A stretch of 64,000 bases of DNA from Lytechinus pictus (Eukaryota): positions 16,802,001-16,866,000 of the forward strand of contig NC_087259.1 in NCBI RefSeq assembly GCF_037042905.1. Reading direction: 5' to 3'. This document shows, piece after piece, positions 2,583 through 61,800 of this stretch. Each line of letters opens with the position of its first letter. Positions within the stretch are counted from its first letter, which is position 1. The position numbers and the translations under genes are program-made. Below the pieces are notes generated by a model. It was not told the DNA's origin and ran no database searches. It worked only from the letters and a program-made list of their open reading frames with translations.

Positions 2583-5500
2583 GTAGGCGTTCAAATTATA
2601 TTAAGAAACGTCCATGTTTTGTGGAGTGGGCCTATTAGAATGGGCAAATCAAATCTTTCTTTAGAAAGGATTTAGGATTTGATGCAAACTTTACGTGGAT
2701 AAAAATTTCATTAAAAAATAAGGTTCTGATTTTATTTATTATTTATTTATTTATTTATAGTTATTATTATTATTTTTTTTTTTTTTGGGGGGGGGCTTTG
2801 AACCTCCACCTTTTCATTTCTCTACTCTCCTCTTGTTCTTTCATTTATTTTGTGGGCGCGTCATCGTCTAGTGGTTCTGACTCTCGTCTTACGAGGGTTG
2901 CCGGTTCGAAACCTAGCCATGGCGTTTCAGCAAAAAAATTGTTTACATCGTACTGCACTCAACTCAGATGAGGGGAATGAGATCCTGGCAGGATACTGGA
3001 AAAAGGTCGTAGCTCGAGTTATAGCATGGACCTATTTCGTAATAGGTCCATGGTTATAGCCGGGGTAATAATTGCTCTTTGGATCCTCAGACAAAAAACG
3101 CTAGAAAAGTCACAATAGTTATCATTGCTATTCTTACCTTATTATCATTGTAATTGCTTATTATTATCAATATTATGATAATTATTATCTTTACTATTAT
3201 CATTATATCATATATGATTAATATCATTATTATTGTCCTTATAATTATTATACCAGGAGAACTAACTTCAATCTTTTCTGCTTTAAGACTAGTGGATAGT
3301 ATGACAAAATGAAAATCATCTTCTTTTCACAAAAGAATTTAAAAATTGAAAGGGCTATTCCTTCTACCCTTTTGGTGTCTTGCGATTCCTTCAATATAAT
3401 TTATATTTATTTGTTATTATCTATTTTTTTTTTAGATTTCTAATATTGCATGCGACCTTAGTATGAGCGATTTGGCGCATTACTAGTAATTTAAATCTTG
3501 ATTGATATATAAATCCTGTATATTGATGACCTCTAGGCCTACACCATGTTAATTGTTGATTTACATTTTTAAGTTCACTAGTCTTAACGTGCTTAGATGT
3601 TAGAAGGGCGTTATAATGGATCATTGTGGCCTAGCGGATTTGTCTCCGGACTTTGAAAAAGAGGGTCGTGGGTTTGAATCTTAGCCATGGTGGAATTTCT
3701 TTCGGCAAGAAATTGATCCACGATGTGCTGCACACAACCCAGATGAGGTAAATGGGTACCTGTCAGGAATCTATTCCTTGATACAGTATGCGTAACAGCT
3801 GCTCTTCTAAAGCCATGGTAATTATGCGGCATTACAGAAGAGCTCTTAGAGACTTNNNNNNNNNNNNNNNNNNNNNNNNNNNNNNNNNNNNNNNNNNNNN
3901 NNNNNNNNNNNNNNNNNNNNNNNNNNNNNNNNNNNNNNNNNNNNNNNNNNNNNNNNNNNNNNNNNNNNNNNNNNNNNNNNNNNNNNNNNNNNNNNNNNNN
4001 NNNNNNNNNNNNNNNNNNNNNNNNNNNNNNNNNNNNNNNNNNNNNNNNNNNNNNNNNNNNNNNNNNNNNNNNNNNNNNNNNNNNNNNNNNNNNNNNNNNN
4101 NNNNNNNNNNNNNNNNNNNNNNNNNNNNNNNNNNNNNNNNNNNNNNNNNNNNNNNNGATATCATTTTTTAATGTCTTATTTCTTAAGGGTCATCTCTGGC
4201 TCTCCAGTGCTATTCGTGTGAAGTTGTATTGGGGGAGGATGTCACCACTCCTAACGAATGCAGAATGAATGTCGATGAAGTTGAAGAGTGTGCAGATGGC
4301 ATCAGTGAATGTTACGTAAGTTCATTTTTTAAAATGAGATTGTGCATTGAAATACACACGTGGGATCCAAAAAATTGGCACCCCCTCCTCTACCCTACAA
4401 AAAATATGTTTCTGACTATTTGGGGATAAAGACATTTTTTTTCATTTTTTTTCTTTATTTTTTAGGATTTCTAAGTTTTAACCATTTTAATTGCTTGCTG
4501 ATATTTTGAACAAAAAATGTATGACCATTTTGAAGTAATAAGCTTTTGAATTTATGGTTATTCAAAATTTGCAAATACGGATTTTCATTATTAGTATTGT
4601 TATCATGAACATGATTATCATCACTTTATACTCGGCAAACAAAATGACAAAACAAAATAATATGCGATTATGTCGTGGCTTTATTGAATAGAGATGAACA
4701 CTTTTCCGAATCTGGTGTCACAATCACATAAGTATAAAACATGGATATGAATACCTCTGATTAGAGACTTACATTCATGTATGTCTGGAACCAACCGATA
4801 GCCTTGGTTTAGCTCCCCGAAGGGGGGTTAAACCCCCGGCTAGAAGGCCCCCCTCCCAGAAAATTCAACGTTAAATTTCACGGCTGCTTTCCCACTGGTT
4901 CTCTGCTAGCCGGACAGGAATACCAGCACAGCTATTAACTACATGTATGAGCTATCGGCAAATCGGTGGATTACAGATGGCATACTTATATCATATAATA
5001 TACATATATATACCAGCCTTCCCGCATGAGAACTTGGGTGAGGCCAAAATTTCACGAAAAATATAAATGTATACAGAATACCAGCCTCCCCGCCTATGAG
5101 ATCAGGTGAGGCCTAAACTGAAAGTTCGAGCGTGACACCCTTACATTCAAATTACAATTGCGTTCCTAAAGTACTATGTAAAGTTATAAATAAATCCCCT
5201 TCGTCTAGGTACCGAATGAGGACCCGATTCAATATGAAATATTAATCAACGTACATGGCATCAAAGTGGAAAATCTAATAGCTAGAGGCTAAAATATCAT
5301 TCACTGCTTTACACACCTTGCAAAAGTGACCATTGTGGATTAAAGAACATATGCCATGCCAATAATATGAGAACTCAATTCATGTGAATTACCAAAATAT
5401 AACGAACACCCAGTCCCAAAAACGGGTAAGGGCGAAAACCCACCTGACCACAGACCAAAATAGATCAGAAGGATAAAAATTCCCTTACGGCCCACATTTC

Positions 5501-7320
5501 TAAATACACGACAATCTTTATATTGTTTTGATGTGCGACCAGGCAAACTGCCCCCGGATTTGAATTCGTGTTTCGTTATATAAATCAACATTAAATTCAT
5601 ATAAGTAAAATAATTCAAATGTCCATATATCATATAACAATTCTACATCCGTTATTCCATTCATAACGAGCTATACACTCCAATAAAACACAAATCAACT
5701 CTGAATGATACCTAGAGTATCTTCATTCTCGACCTTCCCCATTGCATGTGTTTAAACAACATTCCAACATTGTTTGACCCAAACGTAACATTTACATGGA
5801 TGGTTGTTGGGGAGGAGGTGGGAAAATTACAAGCGAATATTTTGGACGTTCATCTCCGTTGAAAGCCAAAACTAAAATGAAGGATTTTTCGCGCCTTCAC
5901 CTAGGCGCGCGCGCCAAAATATCGCGCTCCTTGCGCCCAGTATAAATTATTGTCATTGTGCGCATAAACAATACCGTCTGGCGCGCCATTGTGACGTATC
6001 ACATCGTCAACCGCGCCATTCCAAATTACAAACACCTTCATGACCTGGCTTTGTTCGCCGACCTATAAATCATTTTAAATCGCCGAGTCGTCTTTAAAAT
6101 ACATTATACTCGGCAAACAAAATGACAAAACAAAATAATATGCGATTATGTCGTGGCTTTATTGAATAGAGATGAACACTTTTCCGAATCTGGTGTCACA
6201 ATCACATAAGTATAAAACATGGATATGAATACCTCTGATTAGAGACTTACATTCATGTATGTCTGGAACCAACCGATAGCCTTGGTTTAGCTCCCCGAAG
6301 GGGGGTTAAACCCCCGGCTAGAAGGCCCCCCTCCCAGAAAATTCAACGTTAAATTTCACGGCTGCTTTCCCACTGGTTCTCTGCTAGCCGGACAGGAATA
6401 CCAGCACAGCTATTAACTACATGTATGAGCTATCGGCAAATCGGTGGATTACAGATGGCATACTTATATCATATAATATACATATATATACCAGCCTTCC
6501 CGCATGAGAACTTGGGTGAGGCCAAAATTTCACGAAAAATATAAATGTATACAGAATACCAGCCTCCCCGCCTATGAGATCAGGTGAGGCCTAAACTGAA
6601 AGTTCGAGCGTGACACCCTTACATTCAAATTACAATTGCGTTCCTAAAGTACTATGTAAAGTTATAAATAAATCCCCTTCGTCTAGGTACCGAATGAGGA
6701 CCCGATTCAATATGAAATATTAATCAACGTACATGGCATCAAAGTGGAAAATCTAATAACTAGAGGCTAAAATATCATTCACTGCTTTACACACCTTGCA
6801 AAAGTGACCATTGTGGATTAAATAACATATTCCATGCCAATATATCTTATGACATCAGAGTTTAGGCGGCATAATTTGACAAATTACCGCCAAACGAGAA
6901 TATATTTTATATATATGATCGGCCGCCAAAACACTTCATTCATTTTTAAGCGTTCGTTCATAATTTACTCCAGTTTTGTGTTAGCTGGCCAAGCTAAATC
7001 AGTTATGCATAACGGGGGAGCGTTTCATCAATATTTTCATCCGACAAGTTGTCAGATCTGACATCTTTCCATGATTTTGATTGGCAGAGAGGCACTGTTC
7101 CTATGGTAACTGTCGGAAAAAATGGGACTTGTCGGATAAAACGTCCGACAAGTCCTTTCATGAAACGCCCCCCAGGCCTCCAAGCCCTCCATCAATATAT
7201 TTAAATGAATCAAAATTATACATCTTTGTACAGCCTTTGACGTCGCTGTCTTCCCTGACACAATTACCTGAAGGCTTGCATTCTTTGCCTCTAGATATTA
7301 TTCATTATTATTATTATTAT

Positions 7321-7359
<39 letters not shown>

Positions 7360-10300
7360 ACCTGCTTTCTATCCTTGACCAACATACCAGCCCCCTATTA
7401 AACCAGCATGAAATGAAATTTAAAAACCAGATAGAAATATTCAATTAAAGTATATGAACAAATATCCATCTCAAGTTTAATGAGAGCATGGAAAACACTT
7501 CTACAGGTATGTATTCAGTTGTTGGAAACAATCTCCCATTAGAAATACATTAAACATAAACCGTGTCAGAACTTCCTTCACAATTAAAATCTGATTACCA
7601 TGCACAAAACTAAACAAAACATATGAAGGAAGACAAGATAATATGCAATTTTAAGTATGATGGTTTTGATACAAACCTATTGCAAGCTTCAAAATTGAAA
7701 TTCATTGCATCACTAATTTTTTGATAAGTTATCAATGGTGGCCGCACGCCATCGGTTTGACCTTATAATTAACAAATACTAGCATCCCAACATTGCTAAA
7801 CTAACAATGCATGCCGCACTAAGGTACTGCCTCTTTCTTGTTGCCCCATTTGCCATAAATTTATAACAGTGCATGATTTAACCCTATGCACAAATATAAT
7901 TCAATCGCAGACAATCGATCAATTAAATCCAACCACAGCATTTAGTTAGTTACCTCACACTTAATTTCAACAAATACATAATTATACCATTCCTGAGTTA
8001 TAATGGATTTTGTAAATTGTTCTGTTGAATTGGAGATAAAATAAAAACTGAAAGCTTGCGTAACATCCACAGAATAACCCCATATAACCCATGGAGTATA
8101 ATCATGATAATTGAAGGCACTAAAACTAATTTGAATATGAAACCTTCCCGATCAGGACTATTCGGTTAGAGCTACACTCCTCAATTAAATATGCTGTTAA
8201 ACTAAGAACCATTTAACGTAAACTGGAATTTTACCCGGGATGAATCATTTCGATAATGTTTTCACATATCAACGTAAAACATGACTGCCTTTTTATTGTT
8301 TTATCATCCTCACCACATCCATGAAATAATTATTTATTTCAAACATTAAATAACATCCGAACGAGTAGTCCTTCAAACGATAATGAATAAAATTTGAAGT
8401 GCCGTATACATTGATACATTCATATAATATATGCTTATCCTGAATAATATGTTCCATTCTTGTTGGCAAAAGCATACGTACAAAGGGCTTTCTTCATATG
8501 TTCCACATGTTCAAGTTCCAATCCCATCCAAGTGAGCAATATGGGGGACCTCATAAAAAGTCTGAAACTGAAATCATGACGAATTCATCCTCATATTATA
8601 TGAACTCATCATTCAAGACAGCCCACTGTATCATGATGTTTCAAATATGATCTTTCCCTGTTGCTTGAAGGCTAAAATGTTTGTTCACCAGTTTTTTGAC
8701 TGAAGAAAAACCTCTATTCCTTGGAATACGTGTTAAAACCACCTTGTCGGTAAATTAGTTCTATGAAGATGAAGACGTTGACCACTGCTCCAATTAGTGT
8801 CATTGCTGGCAGCAATACCCAGTTCAGTTATATTTATTATAAGAGCGTATTAACGCCCCAAATGACATCCTTTACTATGGACTCTAAGCTAACTGGTCAG
8901 GAAATAGATCCAACCAAAGGGGAACTCTTTGGCAGCCAGACTTGGAGCGTTCTAGATCATACTATAGTAGGTCTAATTGTCATCAGACTTTCCTGCCAGC
9001 CTACCTTGCCTCGCAGTAGCCCACTTGAATCCCTTTCATCCAAAGATCCGGCACTGCAAAAGAAAAGAAGAAAAAAAGCCTGGGCAGAACACCAAATTCT
9101 ATATCTAGTACCAAAACGGGTCTGTCCCTCTGCTATCCTTTTCAATTTATCACTCTTGTCCCTCTTCGCACCTTGTAGGCCCGAAAACCGGAGGACGTAT
9201 ATAACAGAGGTTATAAACATTTCTTCATCTACTGCAAACACACAAGCACTAGTGAAATGCATATTAAATAATTTGGAAGATTACAATCCTCACCAGTATT
9301 GGGGGGGGGGGGGGGCTCAATTGAACCCCCTAAATGCCTATGGGGTTGTACCATTTATTCAGAAACAACTTGTAAAATATATATATCCTTCGCCCTCTTT
9401 ATCGTAGCTTTCAATATACGCGTACTTAAATTTTGAGCTTTATACGAAACGAGCAGCTTCCCGAAACATCTGAAACCGCCTCCACAGAGTAATCATTAGT
9501 CCCGCTCCTTATGTTTCATTTATAACTGCTATTTTCCAATTCCTTACAGTATAACCCCAACCAGCGATGCAATATCATCTGCATATATCATATGTGCGTG
9601 TTGCAACTTCGACAATATTTCAAAACCAGATTCAATAAGCTTCAAATAATCTGTTTAATTTTAGACTATAACTTCTCTTATCATTTTTATTATTTATTAT
9701 TCTTATTTCAGTATTCGGTTTTACCTCTAGACCACTGCAGAAATAGTCAAGCCAAATTACTGCATACAGCCCATTAGATACATTTTCATAATCAACGGGC
9801 CACCAACACGAATATTTCACACGCTGTCCAATTCCAAGAGGAAGATATACTTTTTGGAACCTGGTTTCAGCTTGAGCAATCGGTAAATTTCGTTTGATTG
9901 GCCAGTATACCTATGTGGCTTATTGCATAATTAAGGCATCCGTATATTGTGTCCCGGCCCCCGAAGCAACGAAGGGAAATGACAGTATGGTACAAGATTT
10001 CAGACACTTTCCAACACAGGCCCATGTCAATCGACTACATCAATTTCCACTGAATGCCTTCAAGGAATTAGCTCATAATTATAAGCTCATCATCATTATT
10101 TATTATTTTATTTGCCGCTTTGATCATGTATACCGGTACCAAATCTATTATCATTATTTTGAATGATACTATCGATATTATCTCAGTTCAAATCATTGAC
10201 CAGTCAAATAGGCCTATTTGATATTGAACCATGAGGTGTAAGGTTCAATTCTGAAGCGCTTTGAGCGGTTAGAGGCTGATAAAGCGCTATATAAAAACAA

Positions 10301-13300
10301 GTAATTCAATTCCAATAGGGCCTAAGCATTTATATTCTTTCATTTCCACAAGATATAAACCATACAAAATCATAAAAAATCAAGGTATCTTTTTAGGAGG
10401 CCCATACTATTATAACAACTGCTCGTTGAACCCCTTGACTTCAATCTAAACTAAATTGGGGATTCCAAGCTAATTCGAAATTACATCCGATTTAATATTA
10501 TGTGCATGGTAAGTTTACTTTTACATGTACCATGTTTCCTCGAAAAGCTAATCACATAATCATAATGATAAGCATCATCTGCTACTTTCCAAAATAATGA
10601 CTGATTCAACAATAACATTTGAAACTGAAAGCCGAGTAGAATCTATAATTATTACCACTAGGCACTACCGGTCTATCCACATAATTTTGCGACCAAGAAC
10701 ACAGCTCTCGCTGGCCCATAATCCAGAAAATGTCATAGAGGTCAAATACTACTTTTATACTAGGCCTAACTGAACCATCTGATAATAGGGTCTATCCCCA
10801 AACAGACATGTAAAACTGCGTCTACTGTAAGTAGATCTAACGTTAGGCCGAGCCTAGTTTCACTCTGTGGTGTCACCATGCACTGCTGTAGTGCAGTAGA
10901 CTGCACTACAGCAGTGCATGGTGATGCACTAGGGCCTACGCTACGCCTACGCTACGGTAACCAACGTTAAAATTGTTGAACTCATTCTCAAAACCTCCAA
11001 TCTCCATCATGACACACCTGGTTCAGACACCAAAACAAGTAGTCAAGTAGGACCAGGTCTAGCCCAGGCTAGGCCTGTGTTTGAATTTTGAAGCTGACCC
11101 CTCCCTTTTCCATCATGATCGTAATTAAAACACTTGGACCAAGTTTAAAATTAATTCCAGGCCAAGTCCAAGTTATGTCTAGCCTAGGATCTATGGCTTG
11201 ACATTTGACCTACATGTAAATCCCCAATTGCGTTAGCATGCCAAATGGCAAATGCCCCCCCCCTGTTTGCCTGACTAGGCCTACATCATTACATGAACTA
11301 GGCCATAACGTTAGGCATTTGATTTGCCTAGCACAAACATGTAAATGGGATCTTCGCGTGCTAACGTAAGAACCGGGGGGGGGGGGTATTGAAGAGCCAT
11401 TAAATTGAAAGAGATTTGTGTCAGACTCAGACTCAGAGGTAACTAATCGACTTCTGACCAATAAGAACATGATTTTTTTTTTTTTTTTTTTCTTCTTTTC
11501 TTCAAAATCTCAGACTAGGATCTAGGCAGGCCTACCTGCGCTAGTCTAAAGAAAGCTCCAAAAGGTACAAATCACCCCGATACTACCGTAGTACTACTTG
11601 TACTACTAGCACTGTAACTTTTTTACTCTGTACTCCTGTAGCAGGCCTCGATCATTCAACAAGCCTAACGTTAACTAACAATAGGCTTAATTCTAAGATA
11701 CGATGCTGAGAAGATTAGGTGGTCGATAAGGGGTAGTTCCAACCATACTAACACTAATCCAGACTGAGTCTAGGCTCTAGCCTAGAATAGGCCTAGATCT
11801 AGATCTATTGCTGCTTCCGTACTCACCGGATAGGCTAGGTCTTGCAAAGACTTGAACTTGTAAATTGTCTGGTACCGACCCCGCGTTCCGTCTGCTAATC
11901 CAGACCGTTGCCTCGGGCTCGGCTCAGCCAGCCCACCTGCTTCACATCATAATCGGGAGCTAGTAGTAGTAGGTACCGGTAGTAGTAGTCACTAGTAGTA
12001 GTAGGACCTCTGACTACCGTAACATTCAATACTCATAATCATGATGGATCCCAGTCGACCGTATGTCGTTGAACGGAATTCCATCTAGCAGCTCGAGTCA
12101 ATTTCTCATCGTTGCTGAAACCAAACAGCTCTAGGACCCAGCCGATCTACTGTGTTATAGCGACAACACGTAGCGTAGCTCCTTGTACCGTCGTATAAAA
12201 CTCGGTTCAATTCAAAGCAGACGGTTAATCGTTAGGCCAGGCAAGAAATAGAGAATCCTCAAGTAATTCGGACAGCATTTAAAGCTGCATTAAGCAAAAT
12301 TAAGATGATTCCCGATCGATGATGGTTTCAACAAAAATTATTGTAGATCTCGTTGTACTTTGTAGATTACGACGTCTCCAAAAACGCAAGGTCGTAAGAA
12401 AAATTACAAGCGAATATTTTGGACGTTCATCTCCGTTGAAAGCCAAAACTAAAATGAAGGATTTTTCGCGCCTTCACCTAGGCGCGCGCGCCAAAATATC
12501 GCGCTCCTTGCGCCCAGTATAAATTATTGTCATTGTGCGCATAAACAATACCGTCTGGCGCGCCATTGTGACGTATCACATCGTCAACCGCGCCATTCCA
12601 AATTACAAACACCTTCATGACCTGGCTTTGTTCGCCGACCTATAAATCATTTTAAATCGCCGAGTCGTCTTTAAAATACATTATATAGTAGTCATAGTTT
12701 AAGAAATCTTAGTCTGGTCGTGCAGAATAAAAAGGTATAAAAACCTTCCAAAATCAGATAAGAAGTTAAGGAGATAAGCAAAACAATTTAAAAAGCAAAA
12801 CAAAAAACAGTATAGTAAGAAAAAAGAAAGAAAGGCAAAAAGAAAACAAGAAGCGCGAAAATGGAAGAAAAGGGAAACAAGGGAATAAGAAGCGTTGTGG
12901 CCCAGTGGATTTGTCTCCGGGCTTTGAAACAGAGGGTGGTGGGTTCAAATCCCAGCCATGGCATAGTTTCCTTCAGCAGTCAGACCGCAGGTCCCTATGC
13001 TAATGAGCAAAAAGGCCAGATTCATCCAAATCATCTTGTGGCTGAATCCTCCTCCTTGCAAAATCTCGTGATTCGTGAGACTTTCTGTCTCTAAGAATTT
13101 ACCTGTTTTAACTTCAAGTTAAATGAAATATTATTGCACCATCAGATAGAGTAAAAGTTACTCTTTCATATTGGTCATTTATTTTGTATACAATATTTTG
13201 TTAAATAAGTAAATTTCTGGCCTGAAAATGTGCCTCAAAACTGAATTTTCTTCCTCTGTTTTCTTTTGCAAATTGTGCAAATCTTTTTATTTTGAGCCTC

Positions 13301-16300
13301 AATAATATCTATATCACCATAAAGCTGAACTTCTGTTCTTTCTCATGATGCCACTCTTGATATGCGGCACCTTTTAATCGGGTCAAGATCACACTTTTCC
13401 CACCAAGATTCAAGACGAGATTTCTGAAATTTTGTACTTGCATGAAATCCAGAGTTCTGATTGGCTGGATAAGGTTCACAGAACAACAGGCGCGGGGTAT
13501 TTGAGGAGATTACCACATGGGAAGTGTGACCTTCCCACGAACCCAGGCACTGGCACCGTTGGAATTTGCCATTGTGTGGTCTTTTTGACCAATCAGAGTG
13601 CAGTATTCTTGTTTTCAAGCTGCTTTATGTACTTGGCAAATGAAAAGTGTGATCTTGACCCGATTAAACCAATTCTTATTTTGAAACCTATATCATTTCA
13701 AAGCAAACATATTCAGCTTTATCATGATATAAAAATCATTTGGGCTCAAACAAAAATAAAGTGTGAAAATAGCAGCTTTTGTCAGGTGAAAATATTTATT
13801 TTGTAGCATATTTTAGATCAAAATTTTAACCTATATTCCAAAATCTTTGAATAAATCCAAACACATGACCTGAAAGAATGATTCTTCTTCTTTACAATGG
13901 TACCAAATTCATGAAATTCGATGCACAATTAGAGCAGCAATGACCGAATGTAAAGAGGTGTTTTGGTCCGCATCAAGCTCATTAAATATGCAAAACATCT
14001 CAAGTCATGAATATCACTTTAGTCCAGGATAGAAGAGGCACAACCTTGTTTTTTTATATATATACAATATTTTTTGATGGTTTCTTGTCAATTCGAGGGT
14101 GCTGATCACGAATCTGGATGATGCCACTCGTGTAACCTTGAGCGTTTTCCGCAAATTGGCAAAATCCAATATGGCCGCCCAAATATGCAAATTACCCATG
14201 AAAATCATAAAATTGTCCGCACATTGGCTATGAAATGCATGAAATTGTGTGGCAGGAGTGAAATACTCTCTGAAAAAATAATTTTTGACAAAATATTTAT
14301 TTTCCTGATATTCAAAATGGCCGCCATAGGCCCCTGTATACTCTATTATGTACAATATGAATAGGGAAAACTAATTTTCACAAAAATGAGCACTAAACTG
14401 CAAAAAATCGCGATGTATCAACAAAGTAATATATGCAAATCATCATTACTAACGAGATATATCATTTATCATCAATATCATATATCATCAATCACAAGAG
14501 TGAGCACTAAAATGCATATATATGTGATGAATTAATTGGATACTGTCTAAAAACGTATTTTCTAACGAAATATATCATTCAGGTTTCAAGTTTGCCGGTT
14601 AAATACTGTATTTTGACTTTCAAAATGGCCGCCATCGACAATAACTGTATTATGTACAATGCAAAGTGGGAAACCAATATTCACAGGAGTGAGCACCATA
14701 AATGCACGTAATAGTGATCTATGAGTAAAATATTGTCTGAAAGCATAATTTCTATTAAGATATATCATTTATTCTGCCAGTTAGGTGGTAAATACCGTTA
14801 TTTTAAAGACAAAATGGCCGCTACAGGCCCTTACGGTATTATATATGCACAATATGAATGGGAACAAATCATTTCAACAGAATTTGGCTTTGCTTGGTCA
14901 AATGGTGATGTATGAGTGGAATATTGTCTGAAAACATGATTTATAACAAAATATATCATATCTTATGTAATTTAGGTGATAAATACTGTATTTCAACATT
15001 CAAAATGGCTGCCATATGCCCTTTTTGTGAACATTATTTGTCTCTATATGGTGGCCATTTTCAATTTAAAAATGCGGCATTTATCACCTTCATTACACAA
15101 CATTATGATATATCTCGTTAGAAACCATTATTTTAGACAATAATTCACCCTTACATCACAATTCACAATTATATGCAATATTTAGAGTCAAGCAAAGCCG
15201 AATTCTGTCAAAATGATATGTCCCATGTTACAATGTACATAATACTTTTAGGACCTATGGCAGTCATTTTGGATTTTAAAGTACAGCATTTATTACCTCC
15301 ACCATGTCCACGACCAATATGTGATAATGTTTAAGACAATATCTTTACTCGTATATCACAGTTATATGCATTTTATGATTCTCACTCTTGTGAAAATTGG
15401 TTTCCCTGTTCGCATGTTACATAATTTAGTAAGGGCTTGTAGAGGTTATTTTGAATGTCAAAATACAGTATTTATCATCTATATGGAAGAAAGAATGCGA
15501 TAATTAAAAAAAAGTTTTCAAATAACGTTTTACTCATACAACAGGATTATAATTATGGATGTCATAGTCAAGCAAATCCAAATTCTTACAAAATATGTCC
15601 CAATTCACATTGTAGATAATACTGTTAGGGCCTATAGGGGCCATTTTGAATTTCATAATACAGTAGTTGTCCCATGCATGACAAAAGAAATGATATGTCT
15701 TGCTATAAAACATGTTGTCAGACAATATTTTACTCGAGTAGATCACAATTACATGCATTATATGTTTCTTACTCGTGTGAAAATTAGTTTCTCCATTTGC
15801 ATTGTACATGATGAATATAGGGGCTATGGCGGCCATTTTGAATTTCATAATACAGCATTTATCACATCAATGGCATATTAACAATTATGTTTTTAATCAG
15901 TATTCCACTCGTTTATCTTAATGATATGCATTTTAGTGCTCAATCTTGTCATTTTTTTTGCCCCGGCCATTGCCATTGTATACTCTTTGGGCCAGTGGCG
16001 GCTATTTTAGATATCAAAATACAGCAGTGTTCCCATATATGACATGATATAAATGATATATCTCGTTAGTAATGATGATTTGCATGTATAACTTCGTTCA
16101 TACATACGCGATTTTTGCAGTTTAGTGCTCATTTTTGTGAAAATTAGTTTTCCCGATTCATATTGTACATAATAGTATACAATGGCCTATGGCGGCCATT
16201 TTGAATATCAGGCAAATAAATATTTTGTCAAAAATCATTTTCTAAGATTGTATTTCACTCCTGCCACACAATTTCATGCATTTCACAGCCAATGTGCGGA

Positions 16301-22900: not shown

Positions 22901-25900
22901 TTACTGGTGCGTGGTTGAAAAAAAATGTATATTCAACAAAAATATTTATGAAATACGCCATTGTTGTAGCCCTATCGCACGAGATGACATGAGGAACACC
23001 GGAATGATTCTGTTCCACCGTGAAGTAGACAAAAAAAACAGAACGAGTTGTGTTTTAACATTCTTGTCCTTTGCCCTTCTCTTTGAAGACGAATAGGAGT
23101 GGTGGAGACGTTACGTCCAAGGGAACTCAGAATATGCTTAGCAGCTGGAGAAACAATACCAGGGCAGCAGATCAACGAACCAAAATGAGAAAAGCGTTGG
23201 TTGAGGCGGAGTTGACTGCTGTGGCGGAGAAGTATCTGCTCCTAGGTAAGATTTACCGAGGTGCAAAAAAAAAACGAAATAAAGAACAGAGTAGGGCGGC
23301 GATAAAAAAAGGGGACATAGCTCCAGTAGTAAAGGGGATAAAAGAGGACGTAACAGAAATTGGAAGAAGGGTAACAAGAAAGAACGGTCGGAGTGTAAAA
23401 CTCTAAATATTCCTGTTATTCGACTGAGAAAAACATGACGTCAAGTTTAGGTCGTCTTACTTTAACCCCCCCCCCCCCCCTCCATTAAACTACCATGGCG
23501 CCGCCCCTGAGAAAGTCACAGAACGTGACAAATTAGACAAATATAGTGATATCAAAGTTATTTTACGGTATAAACTATGCTGATTGACTGCAGCTTCCAT
23601 TCCCAAAATAATAAATTGGAGATTGTTTCTGCATCGGTCTTCAGTTTCAGAGAAATTGGAATATTTTCAGATTCGGGGACATCAAAATACAATATCATCA
23701 TCATGAATTACATTGTCTCGCTTGGCGGCAATCAATAATGGTCGTCGAAAAATAACATTGTCGCAAACAATAATAAAACGTTTGTTACTATCCATAGTGT
23801 TTTATTTCGGGTATCCAAATGGGCTGTATTTTTCAATATATATAGTGAAGACAGAAGACGGAAATGAACTAAGAATGCTTTATTCATACCATCACATAAT
23901 TATTGTAATGACAAAGCTAAGATTATCGTTCTTTCAAATTAATTCATGAGTTTCTTTGGAAAATATATTACTAGCACTATCGCATACATTTACGACCTTG
24001 ATAGCGGAAAACGATATTAATGGGGTATTTTCGTTCACAAAATCTTTATCTCATTTTATCAGATCCCGAATCGTCATCAGCGATGACTGCTCAAGAGGTG
24101 AAACAATGCCAAAAGGACCTTATCCAGTACTATGTGGATGACGCTTGCAAGATTAAGACGTCTCCACTCGATCCAGACAACTACGTGGAACTTGACGAGA
24201 TATTCATCAATCTAAAGATGGAAAAGAAACAAAATCAACCGGGAACACCAACAAAAGAGCCACTGGCGTACGATGATATCATGAAGCTTCCATCCAAGAG
24301 GTTGATGATTGTAGGAGAAGCTGGAGTTGGGAAAACAACCGTATGTGCAAAGATGGCTCACGACTGGGCAAGGGGGCAACACTTCAAGAACATCAAGCTA
24401 TTGCTGTTTATTCTCCTCTGCGAAGTGACGGATCAGAAGACTCTTGGGGAAATTGTCAAGGATCGACTTTCTGATAGCAATGACGTGAAAGAAAAGCAGA
24501 TTGATGAGTACGCCCGAACCAATCCAGAGAAAGTCCTCATTCTCATGGACGGATTGGATGAATTCAATAACAAGGCCAAGATCATCACGGAGATCCTCGA
24601 GGCGACCAAACTCAAATCCTGCCAGGTTATCGTCACAGCCCGCCCCTGCGAAGTCGAGAAGATAAGCACCAAGGACAGACTGAGCAAAATCTATACACGT
24701 ATCCACGTTGAGGGGTTCAGCAAGGCTCAAATCCAGAACTACGTTAGGAAATTCTTCGAAAAGAATGACCCAAAGGCTGGCGAGAATCTCCTACATTTCA
24801 TACAAGAGAAGGGTGGCGTTATCTCTGAGACCATAGCATCCTATCCAATATACTGTACACTGCTTTGCCATTTGTGGAATGACGAAAAGCGACGAGATGC
24901 AATCAGGAAGTTTCAGACCTTCTTTCAGATCTTCGATGAAATGGTGATTCAGCTGAAAGAACACCACTTATCAAAGACCATAGGTGATGGAGAAAATCTT
25001 GACTACACAGAGGTCGACGCTTGTTTCGAGGTTCTCGGGAAAATAGCCTTCACGGGACTTGTAGACAAGCAGATGATCTTTGACAAAGGGAGCTTCAAGA
25101 CCGGCGATCTTACCTTGGCATACGAAGTGGGAATACTCAGTACAAAGGGTAAGAGGCTAGCACCACGAGCTATGAGGAGGAAGACGGGCAAACGATTCGT
25201 CGAAGAAGTCTTCTTCCCACACAAACTCCTGCAGGAGTTCATGGCAAGCATTCATCTCTCATCGTGCCATAAAGCAAGTCCTGATAAATTCAAGAAGATG
25301 CTGAAGAAGAACATGTTGGAGGATTATATGAAGTTCAGGTACGTCTTCTACTTCACTGCCGCACAGGGGCCAGAGATTGGACGAGATACTCTGAAGCTAC
25401 TTAGGAGGGGAAGGGTTCATGAAGACTTCATTGTCGCTACTGCCTTCGAGTGTCAAGACAAGGAAATGACCCAACCGTTCATCGAGAAGCTCCTTGCCAG
25501 AGATCAAGCAGTACAGCTGACGGATTACATGCAACCCCACACGGTCACCGCGTACCTCTACGCTATGGACACGTTCGATGATTTGGTAGGATTCATGACT
25601 TCATAAATAATACAAATACATCCCTTCCACCTCCATTCGAATTCCAAGACTGGCAGAGATAATTGATCAGTCATTAGCTGTCACAAAACCAGACTGGGTA
25701 ATAGGAACAACAAGGACCACGCCTCTGCACCCTTTTATTAAAATGTGCACTTCTGAGACTGGTACCTTAAGTTTAATATCGATCGTGTTTTGTACATAAT
25801 ATTTTAAAGAAATCTTCAAAACTAGAGTCTCCTTTCTGTTCTCCTTTCAGTCATCTTGTTATCAATAATGTTTTATGGGAAATGTCTGACCAATCGTCTT

Positions 25901-58831: not shown

Positions 58832-61800
58832 ATGGGACCAGCAAAGAGGGTAGCCGTGGTGGGTGCTGGGGTAAGCGGTCTGGTTTCGGTCAAAGCATGC
58901 CTTGAAGAGGGACTGGAACCCGTGTGCTATGAACGGAACGATGAGATAGGTAAGTGACTCGGTATCAATACCAGAGGAGCATTTCGTTAAAAAAAAAATT
59001 GTCTGAATTCAGGCATCTCTTTGATTCGCTGAGAAGCGCAGTACCTCCGGCGGGACTTCCGGTAACTGTCGGATCAAACAATCACTGTCTGATAAAACAT
59101 CCGACACGTCCTTCCCCGATCTAACAACTCTCCTTAATTTTGATTGGCTGAGAAGTGACCGTCGGATCAAACAGAGACAGAAAGTTTCTCTCCATCCCTT
59201 TTGTGAATCATCAGTGGTTTCCTTTTGGTCAGGACATACTGTTGACTGCCAACACGCTTCTTGATGGAGTTTGCTAATGAGAAATCTGTGCCATGATTAA
59301 CTGAAATCTTAAAGTGTCTTCACAAGAGTTGATTTCCGGCGCTACGGAAGAGAGCACATGATTGTGTGCCCCATTCCAAAAGGTCCTCGATAGAGTCACC
59401 GACCAAAGAGGTTCACTGATGATAATCATGCCATCCATCCCCCAAAACAGTTATGGAATATGAAGGGAAGTCCTCTTAATCACTAATTGTAATCAGCATG
59501 TTTGATACCATGGCCAATGGTCTTGATCAACCATAACGTATCGCCAATATGTGCGCTATTTACTTTTGCAGGGCTATGGACCACACAATGTTGATTGATA
59601 AACCTGATCACGATTATTGATTGGGCTATCATTCCAATGATAACTATGTGACTTTTTCCCTGCCGTCAGCTCTACTTATAATAACATCCCCGTGGGGTTC
59701 CACAGGGCACGAAACTGGGCCGATCATATTTCTCGTCATGTTGTCTACTCCACGGAGAATCAGTTTTTGTTTGTTTGATTGATTCAATACATATACATAC
59801 TAGACGTATTACTCAGTTTCTTTTACAAATTTCTGTAAAATGGGACTGACCCACAAACCACAAATATAGACTGCTCAATAGAAATTCCATCAACCGGATA
59901 CTAATTCGCCTTATGATACATTGTTTATAGGGAAATTAAATGGTTATTCTTCGGTTATTTTTTCCCCGACCAAGTTAACTTCACCTTTCTTGGAGCAATG
60001 TATAAATGACGGTTACTTTTAATTTTAGTTTACACATCATTTAGACTAGATCATTTTCGATGTGGAATATAAAACAAATAATCACATTTTGTGGTTTAAT
60101 TCATGAAAAAAAATCACTTTCTCGGCGAAATAAGGTAGAAGATATATTTCTTAATCTCTGCTTCGAAAAAAAATGTCATTATAGTCAATCGATCCCTCTC
60201 ATCCATCACATCCTCTATCTCTATCTCTCATCTCTCAAGTTCCACATCTCCACTCTTTCACTTTACTGTTTCGTTTTCTCTTTCTCCTTTTTCACATGAT
60301 TTCTCTCTAAATAACAGGTGGAATATGGGTATATCGTGATACAAATCCAAACGGGCAGTCCGATGCGGCCATCTACGAAGGTTTGGTCACCAACTCGAGC
60401 AAAGAGATGATGTGCTTCAGTGATTTCCCGTTCCCGCGGGACTGGGCACCCTACATCCAAGGTCGACAACTCAACGAGTATTACCACGCCTACGCTGAAA
60501 GATTTGATCTCAACAGACATATACATCTTAATACCGAGGTAAGAAGTGGTTGTCTTGTCTACTGTTACAAAGAATTTAGAACAGATCAGAAGGCAAAGGG
60601 TTTATATCCCTGCTCAGCACTTTCACTCTGCGGCAAGACGTTAATCTACAGAGCTACTGCATTGCTACCCAGGGGTTTAAAGTTAGAAGAAACCGTTAAT
60701 ATAGCGTGTTTTAATAGTACATTATTAGTCTATTGAAATTAATGACACCTTCCACCTTTCATTACATCTACAAAATGACACTCCATTAATGCTGCTGCTG
60801 CTGCAGGAGCTGCCAATAACTTGTGCAAGGCGTAAACTACATCGTCACATTTTTGTACCTACTTATCATACTACCAAGCATCAATCATTTATATTGATTA
60901 CTTTTACAGGTTTTGTGTGTCGAGAAGACTAAGGATCACGAAACGACGGGCCAGTGGTCTGTATTGGTCCGGAACCAGGATGGGACAGAGAGCGAGTCTG
61001 TCTTCGATGCTGTCATGGTGTGTACGAGTATCTTCAACAAGCCATTCGTTCCGTCATACCCTGGAATGGACGTCTTCAAAGGAGAGATCTGCCACAGTCA
61101 ACAGTTCCGTAAAGGAGAAAACTTCAAAGACAAGACAGTTCTTGCTGTTGGTATGGCCACCTTTCATTCCATCTTATTAAAAAGTCTCCTATTGCTTCTT
61201 GTCATTTTTATTGGAGTTGAAGATTGTAATCTTTACTTTTTATTTGTTACACTCCTCCTATTGCTCCATTGTTATAGCTACTGTCAGATTGGTTTCTATG
61301 TGATGCGGTCTATACACAAAGTTTCAGATGCTCAACTTTGGATACAGGGCATGAATAAAAGTATTGCATGTGAATGCTATATAAATGTACATCTTTCAAC
61401 CTATGGGTCCAGATCAACTCAGCACTTCGGATAACTCGGCCTCATTGAAAAATCAGGTGCCGAGTTGTCCATCATACAACTTATTATCACTATCCCTACG
61501 CTAATACTGAAACTAAAATACAACAAAACAATTTAATTCATAGTAGAAAACGCTGCAATTAATTTGCATTACATATTCGTAAACATAATAGTGATCCGAT
61601 ATTGTACGACTCAGCACCTAATTTTTTGCGGGGCCGAGTTGTCCATAGTGGTTCCGAGTTAGCTGTCACCCATATATACAGACCATTGCCAAATGAATAC
61701 GTGAAGTCATATGTTCACTTTTCGTATCATACATGTATGTCATATGACTGGAAGATTGGTCAGTGGGTGTTAAAGTGCGTAGGGTAAGGTGTCCATGTGC

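Follow-up and report, generated by a model that had tools for sequence, protein, structure and literature searches.

A young non-coding mobile element family of Lytechinus pictus with a split-direct-repeat layout

Results and Discussion

The Composite Element

The stretch analyzed here, called the window, comprises 64,000 nucleotides of Lytechinus pictus (NCBI RefSeq assembly GCF_037042905.1, contig NC_087259.1, positions 16,802,001 to 16,866,000 of the forward strand). Near its left end lies an 8.06-kb composite arranged A1-x-B1A2-y-B2, which is one copy of a very young, non-autonomous, multi-copy, non-coding family of mobile elements. Positions are given in window coordinates unless a contig handle precedes them; A and B denote repeats, and x and y the interiors between them. 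The parts of the element are the following.

4626–4628, plus strand: left copy of the TTA core; the element boundary falls somewhere inside this TTA.
4626–5364, plus strand: A1, the first 739-bp repeat A, with 3 substitutions relative to 6104–6842.
5365–5822, plus strand: x, 458 bp of unique sequence in the middle of the complete unit A-x-B; it follows A1 in every composite and in the solo short copies.
5823–6108, plus strand: B1, the first 286-bp repeat B, with 100% identity to 12400–12685.
6057–6114, plus strand: imperfect palindrome spanning the B|A junction, from single-stranded DNA folding.
6104–6106, plus strand: single TTA core at the internal B1|A2 junction (ACA-TTA-TAC), with 47 exact junctions in the genome.
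6104–6842, plus strand: A2, the second repeat A, from alignment to A1.
6843–12399, plus strand: y, the non-coding interior of the long unit; the same y recurs at other loci.
7015–7176, no strand assigned: small, unrelated high-copy repeat inside y, recognized by RNA depth and loose read ends.
12400–12685, plus strand: B2, the second repeat B; the element closes with ...ATACA (12680), followed by TTA (12681–12683).

An earlier note, made from the letters of the window, had proposed the layout A-x-B-A-y-B with these coordinates, and a repeat finder together with pairwise alignment bears it out. In the pairwise alignment, each of the three A1/A2 substitutions lies near the inner end of A, B1 and B2 show zero differences, and similarity between x and y is undetectable. 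Terminal inverted repeats and TG..CA ends are both absent, as the note had said, and the motif pair that it described at the junction, GCCGAGT (6082–6088) and ACTCGGC (6108–6114) separated by 19 nt, is present. The interior y also contains a perfect 25-nt palindrome with a 2-nt center (10873–10924).

Copies across the Genome

At least 142 candidate matches to repeat A and at least 137 to repeat B were found across the genome; the best 40 of each are 98–100% identical, those of A 99–100%. Counting by pattern found the 3′ end 128 times, the 5′ end 122 times, and the exact B|A junction 47 times. Reversed controls yielded 0 matches for each of the two end patterns; with up to 3 mismatches allowed, the junction pattern yielded 99 matches in total and 30 + 23 in the controls. 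The pattern as a whole lies far beyond chance. One of the junction near-matches, C1:30297177, was rejected as an unrelated tandem repeat.

The family occupies ~81 loci, and at ~46 of them it is present as the composite A-x-B-A-y-B. Solo A-x-B is found at ~11 listed loci and solo A-y-B at ~8, accompanied by a few truncated copies and one short-short-long trimer (C12:3045364). The order within the composite is constant, the short unit preceding the long one. At every composite locus examined, the y behind A2 is identical in kind, with 93–100% identity at other loci. The B-to-B spacing is typically ~7.25 kb, and therefore the y of the window carries a deletion of ~0.7 kb. Two copies of unusual size or with a lone end, C5:23551542 (5 kb) and C8:18181149, proved to be long variants without open reading frames (ORFs).

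Two subfamilies were distinguished. The first, starting TTATACTCGGC, accounts for 57 5′ ends and has a short unit of 1,478 bp; the second, starting TTATTCTCGGC, accounts for 53 5′ ends and has a short unit of ~1,570 bp, its A containing a duplication of 89 bp. In comparisons between the two, identity is ~96% for A and ~93% for x plus B, whereas it is only 82–86% for y, which marks A as the most constrained part of the element. Older, broken relatives, 88–94% identical and in inverted orientation, lie in C15:24481000-24490999 at offsets ~3480–6420 (junction near-matches C15:24484708/24487212). They have kept the B|A junction, and the motifs flanking it have changed (TTTTCGGCG where A starts).

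The two copies of each repeat evolve in concert. A1 equals A2 exactly in 9 of 15 elements (738 columns), with a mean of 0.9 differences within an element, and B1 equals B2 exactly in 9 of 12 (283 columns), with a mean of 0.5. When copy 1 is compared with copy 2 of different elements, the mean rises to 4.1 differences for A and 4.5 for B, and in a permutation that shuffled the partners none of 10000 rounds reached the observed total. Variants private to a single element among those sampled occur in both of its copies, among them insertions of 6 bp and 1 bp and several single changes. In one composite of subfamily 2, A1 and A2 are the same over 807 bp and B1 and B2 over 284 bp, even though A, x, and B of this subfamily have diverged by 4–7% from those of subfamily 1. 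Only two sites in A depend on position; both are at its inner end, and two of the three A1/A2 differences of the window fall there. Such concerted repeats imply that both copies are remade from one template in each round, or that they are homogenized very efficiently.

The earlier note regarded the composite as a "heterodimer" of elements with different captured interiors. This is not supported: the composite is one unit, as seen from its fixed order, its predominance (~46 of ~81 loci), the family-specific y, and the concerted A and B copies, and y, taken in the note for a variable interior, is the same after A2 at all composites examined. The note's broader description, of a young, non-autonomous, multi-copy mobile family without terminal inverted repeats or LTR-type ends (LTR, long terminal repeat) whose borders and junction share a short core, is supported. 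It had also suggested reinsertion of the element at its own end. If independent elements repeatedly landed next to one another in this way, a fresh heterodimer would be formed each time. Both borders do regenerate the preferred target A-TTA-T, and one trimer exists. However, the ~46 composites are all short-then-long, and the paired copies belong to the same lineage down to their private variants; reinsertion would also produce long-short, long-long, and mixed-lineage dimers, and none of these was seen among the listed copies. We therefore regard this explanation as highly improbable.

Borders and Target Sites

Unique flanks were surveyed at 23 left and 22 right borders. The left flank carries TTA in 23 of 23 cases; the preceding base is A in 16 of 23, and the base one further out is C in 8 of 23. 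On the right, TTA is present in 21 of 22 flanks, and the next base is T (12) or A (9). The joints had been described in the earlier note as TTATA. The TTA part of this is constant at the left border, the junction, and the right border; the full TTATA is not constant, and the TA that follows TTA at the right border of the window is there by chance. The targets, (C)A-TTA-(T/A), resemble the junction ACA-TTA-TAC, although this likeness is weak. At the 22 right ends, no read-through into flanking DNA was found. As read from the flanking sequences, these patterns are compatible both with an exchange within TTA that leaves no duplication and with a strict 3-bp duplication; the single shared TTA at every junction and the absence of terminal inverted repeats favor the exchange.

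Several known classes were rejected from these borders and from the layout. A PIF/Harbinger-type DNA transposon, which makes a 3-bp TTA/TAA duplication, would have a terminal inverted repeat between its 5′ and 3′ ends, and this is absent. Canonical Helitrons have 5′ TC and 3′ CTRR ends and insert between A and T, whereas the ends here are (T)TATAC... and ...ATACA(TT), with TTA as target. An LTR element was rejected because a second x and TG..CA ends are both missing. Multiround rolling-circle copying of one circle was rejected because x differs from y, so that A-x-B-A-y-B cannot come from a circle that holds one A and one B.

A DNA-only, Crypton-like tyrosine-recombinase element would be excised as a circle and reintegrated at TTA, the TTA at the ends of copies already in place also serving as a target. 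The TTA at the borders and the junction, the junction-like targets, and the many recombinase ORFs in the genome are in its favor. Conversely, cut-and-paste movement fails to explain the ~81 near-identical loci, the fixed short-long order, and the concerted repeats, and Cryptons have not been described with split direct repeats (PMC13465315). We judge such an element very unlikely. The family resembles canonical Helitrons in its head-to-tail joins and lack of terminal inverted repeats, and Cryptons in the short direct repeat at its borders; it differs from them in having no 5′ TC/3′ CTRR ends, no A^T target, and no recombinase gene. Split direct repeats are not known from either Helitrons or Cryptons.

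The Junction Complement

The palindrome at the junction has its first arms, GCCGA, TATAA, and ATTTTAAA, within B, and these pair with TTTAAAAT where B ends and with TTATA and TCGGC where A begins. This pairing pattern means that the B-side arm is the reverse complement of the end-to-end joint. Folded as single-stranded DNA, 6057–6114 reaches −9.5 kcal/mol (z −2.9). Subfamily 2 carries a two-sided change, from TTATA to TTATT at the 5′ end and from TATAA to AATAA in B, which keeps the pairing; its junction folds at −10.8 kcal/mol (z −3.3). The true 3′ end and the 5′ end, when folded separately, are weaker, with z −1.5 and +0.4, respectively. The motif TATAAAT lies at 6064–6070, ~35–40 nt upstream of the start of A2. 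Judged from this motif, a putative promoter in B could drive transcripts that begin with the first few bases of A where units are arranged in tandem or as circles.

The same segment can be compared with the ends of Helentrons and of the non-autonomous elements derived from them, the HINEs. The hallmarks of HINEs are an inverted motif 2–4 nt from the 5′ end with its counterpart 38–60 nt from the 3′ end, a short palindrome 8–35 nt from the 3′ end, and insertion at TT (PMC4067079). Here, the 5′ inverted motif TATA-C-TCGGC lies 1–2 nt from the 5′ end, its partner GCCGA-CC-TATAA (6057–6068) lies ~36–47 nt from the 3′ end, and the 8-bp palindrome ATTTTAAA-N13-TTTAAAAT stands between this partner and the 3′ end, ending 3–4 nt from the latter. 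Subterminal inverted repeats and a 3′ palindrome of the HINE kind are thus both present, with an inverted motif that is shorter and interrupted (~11 nt vs 12–15 bp). Likeness to HINE or DINE-1-like elements extends to a site compatible with insertion between T and T, the position of the second motif ~40 nt from the 3′ end, and the non-coding character. The differences are that no autonomous partner with these ends was found, that the dimer is the main mobile form, that the repeats are concerted, and that TTA is strictly required on both sides.

These ends make a composite non-autonomous Helentron the rival that deserves most attention, although we consider it unlikely. According to this explanation, a short and a long rolling-circle element with common ends were fused head to tail and now move as one, the internal ends being skipped. 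The skipping might come from the extended hairpin of the junction, and solo copies might arise from use of the internal ends. The 5′ motif, the 3′ partner, and the 8-bp palindrome match the published HINE signature (PMC4067079); the element can be placed between T and T, which is compatible with no duplication (T|TATAC...ACAT|T); and the junction is a precise 3′-to-5′ join. Against it, the identical B1 and B2 terminators should give mostly solo units, whereas composites are the majority. The 22 right ends show no read-through into the flank, and the target requires TTA on both sides, beyond TT. Moreover, copying of the composite as DNA leaves unexplained the private variants common to A1/A2 and B1/B2.

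Transcripts and Independent Reads

RNA evidence comes from three rRNA-depleted, paired runs carrying the species label. Over 4600–6800, which covers A, x, B, and A, the read depth is ~3–25, and nearly all reads have their first mate on the minus strand. In most stranded libraries, a first mate on the minus strand corresponds to plus-strand RNA. The left flank has zero RNA reads. Fixed differences and two variant forms in the RNA indicate that its source is several copies other than that of the window. At 5756–5836, roughly half the RNA reads leave out 79 bp across the x/B boundary and carry TAT in their place; as this gap lacks GT..AG, it points to a variant copy and not to a splice.

The small repeat at 7015–7176 has an RNA depth of ~170–250 per strand class, in both classes. 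Hundreds of reads run off it at 7015 and at 7172–7176, which implies transcription of this repeat in many other settings. Repeated CCGACAAGT-like motifs occur within it.

In an independent run, a contig of DNA-like depth spans the junction (5978–6822). The depths in this run are ~23 for x, ~15 for y, and ~45 for B and A, consistent with the copy counts. The earlier note had named an assembly or haplotype artifact as one of the findings that would overturn its description. Such an artifact, or a local segmental duplication, has the perfect B1/B2 identity in its favor and nothing further. It is ruled out by the 47 exact junctions on many chromosome-scale contigs together with the independent contig, and its probability is practically negligible.

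Coding Capacity and Candidate Enzyme Donors

The ORFs of y comprise one of 214 amino acids without a Pfam match, the remainder being at most 101 amino acids long, and among the 11 y ORFs that were scanned, no Pfam family reached the cutoff. Neither reverse transcriptase nor RNase H nor gag is encoded in y, and the C5:23551542 and C8:18181149 variants lack them likewise. A long copy with a tyrosine recombinase or Rep/Hel, proposed by the earlier note as something to look for, is not found among the listed members. The genome holds 83 tyrosine-recombinase (PF00589) matches, with 98 of 200 candidates scored. Because the recombinase is not encoded, the family, if it is of the DIRS order, could only be a non-autonomous derivative.

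Rep/Hel ORFs are intact in the genome, 2,600–3,500 amino acids long, and fall into at least 3 groups; the presence of several such families is in keeping with a Helentron origin. However, pieces of these ORFs gave zero tblastn matches in the window, and with all candidates scored, 0 of 39 Rep (PF14214) matches lay near the listed family ends. HINEs normally share >95% of their termini with the autonomous partner.

The autonomous Helentron on C11 (C11:24743500-24753499 and adjoining sequence) was considered as a candidate partner. It exceeds 20 kb and has a single ORF of ~3,460 amino acids. On its 5′ side it carries at least 5 tandem units of ~830 bp, which are 98–100% alike within a copy and ~96% between copies; this likewise resembles the repeats described here and favors the Helentron explanation. 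Conversely, its sampled 5′ and 3′ regions have no similarity to A, x, y, or B, and its unit junction shows no fold. Other C11-type Helentron copies have their start precisely at a boundary between units (query positions 413 and 1262), and the 3′ side has a second tandem repeat, of ~626 bp. Nested in this 3′ region is a ~590-bp element with internal inverted halves that are ~80% alike (L080:1344-1931). With 7,682 first-look candidates in the genome and scored copies ~98% identical, it looks like a very abundant young miniature inverted-repeat transposable element (MITE). Rfam searches returned nothing credible, and the family termini are absent from the supplements of the HINE paper (PMC4067079).

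A Proposed Non-Autonomous Split-Direct-Repeat Element

We propose that the family is a non-autonomous split-direct-repeat element of the DIRS order (Ngaro/PAT/VIPER-like), in which A-x-B is a SIRE-like or solo-LTR-like unit, and we hold this with somewhat better than even confidence. The earlier note could not assign the family. That statement is eased here by a tentative architectural class, and split direct repeats of the Ngaro/PAT type, one of the analogies that the note itself had listed, are the best match. Ngaro/PAT elements have the layout A1-[ORFs]-B1A2B2, and isolated AB repeats of them are known (PMC8547959). In split-repeat elements, A1 and A2 as well as B1 and B2 are 100% identical (PMC9210276, PMC6681497). 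The order A1...B1A2...B2 is found in the window and at ~46 loci, with x between A and B as a deviation, and the within-element equality of A1 and A2 and of B1 and B2 is found here too. Sea urchins are hosts of Ngaro/PAT-type elements (PMC8547959, PMC9210276, PMC4157794).

DIRS elements start and finish with the junction trinucleotide and make no target-site duplication, and for their integration the 3-bp sequence of the circle junction exchanges with the same trinucleotide in the genome (PMC3266345). In DIRS-1, an internal complementary region is essential, the termini are restored from internal templates, and the reverse transcriptase acts in trans (PMC7192593). By analogy with DIRS-1, the complementary segment of a single-stranded copy would bring its two ends into alignment, and their joining would yield a circle, which may then recombine at TTA with a genomic TTA and leave no duplication. 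The empty site predicted in the earlier note, with a single TTA, would agree with such a model. The second repeat copy would be split by y, an internal region devoid of ORFs, and an autonomous element would supply reverse transcriptase and recombinase in trans. Solo A-x-B, solo A-y-B, and the trimer may derive from recombination between direct repeats; an unequal A1/A2 exchange would give exactly the observed trimer plus a solo long unit. DIRS-type features of this kind would explain why the order is fixed, why composites predominate, and why the repeats are concerted, as well as the TTA pattern, the complement at the junction, and the existence of solo forms.

The comparison with known members shows both likeness and difference. 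As in Ngaro/PAT, copies within an element are identical or nearly so, complete units are scattered, and target-site duplication is probably lacking, as judged here from the TTA pattern. In contrast, the present family has no ORFs for gag, reverse transcriptase/RNase H, or recombinase, its repeats are long (739 and 286 bp), the complete unit contains the 458-bp x and, relative to the probably transcribed strand, is situated upstream of the long region, and ~81 loci are occupied, whereas most DIRS-order families are few-copy. SIRE consists of A2, an exclusive region, and B2 of VIPER, and it is dispersed and non-coding (PMC6681497). A-x-B has the same makeup, occurs alone, and is transcribed here, x (458 bp) being comparable to the ~30-bp exclusive region of SIRE. 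This likeness to the Trypanosoma cruzi elements is one of architecture; the host belongs to another kingdom, and the long partner here is also non-coding. With DIRS-1, the family has in common the same trinucleotide at the ends and at the junction (in DIRS-1, the circle junction), together with an internal region complementary to the joined termini. DIRS-1, however, has inverted terminal repeats and a complementary region of 40–90 bp, and here the complementary region is ~22 nt, imperfect, and situated inside B.

Several observations weigh against this assignment. Canonical split repeats place A2 beside B2, whereas here the 458-bp x separates A and B. The region 7200–10399 of y is essentially without RNA in the three runs (depth 0 in most bins, at most 1.5), and no full-length template was seen in them. 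No member encodes a reverse transcriptase or a recombinase, no PF00589 match lies inside or next to the listed members among the candidates scored, and an autonomous element with A, B, or the junction in common was not found. The concerted pattern could instead be produced by frequent gene conversion between direct repeats. Additionally, on the sequence of the ends, the junction complement and its hairpin also match the published Helentron/HINE end signature.

A further explanation is a separate, protein-less type of element that combines split repeats with a complement of its own end joint. A single-stranded circle would be splinted on this complement, both repeats would be regenerated in each round, and the enzymes of recombinase retroelements or of Helentrons would be parasitized. 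We rate this as distinctly unlikely; if true, it would provide a mechanistic bridge between recombinase retroelements and Helentrons.

Surroundings of the Element

An 84-bp direct repeat, 82% identical between its copies, is found on both sides of the element (3624–3707 and 12895–12978). It is tRNA-like, with a GGTTCGAATC-type box, and ARAGORN found no tRNA in the two copies; it is probably the head of a short interspersed element. Just upstream of the element there is a run of N (masked or a gap) at ~3860–4160. Just downstream, 13373–13668 contains 27-nt perfect inverted repeats 242 nt apart and is MITE-like. Two host genes were recognized further to the right: a 528-amino-acid ORF with a NACHT domain (24020–25606, E 1.8e-25) and a 173-amino-acid ORF with an FMO-like piece (60913–61434, E 1.9e-21).

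Conclusions

The architecture of this family is known, but the family is fully non-coding, its repeats are long, its complete unit includes a unique piece, and its copy number is unusually high and recent. In this new form of a known architecture, a DIRS-1-like junction complement is combined with split direct repeats. Retrotransposons with a tyrosine recombinase generally have few copies, and what is known of their replication comes from a single experimental system, DIRS-1. The present family provides a natural minimal substrate, which marks A, B, and the junction complement as the non-coding parts likely to be sufficient for mobilization in trans. It also illustrates that the signatures of Helentron derivatives and of split-repeat elements can coincide, which matters for the annotation of repeats in echinoderms.

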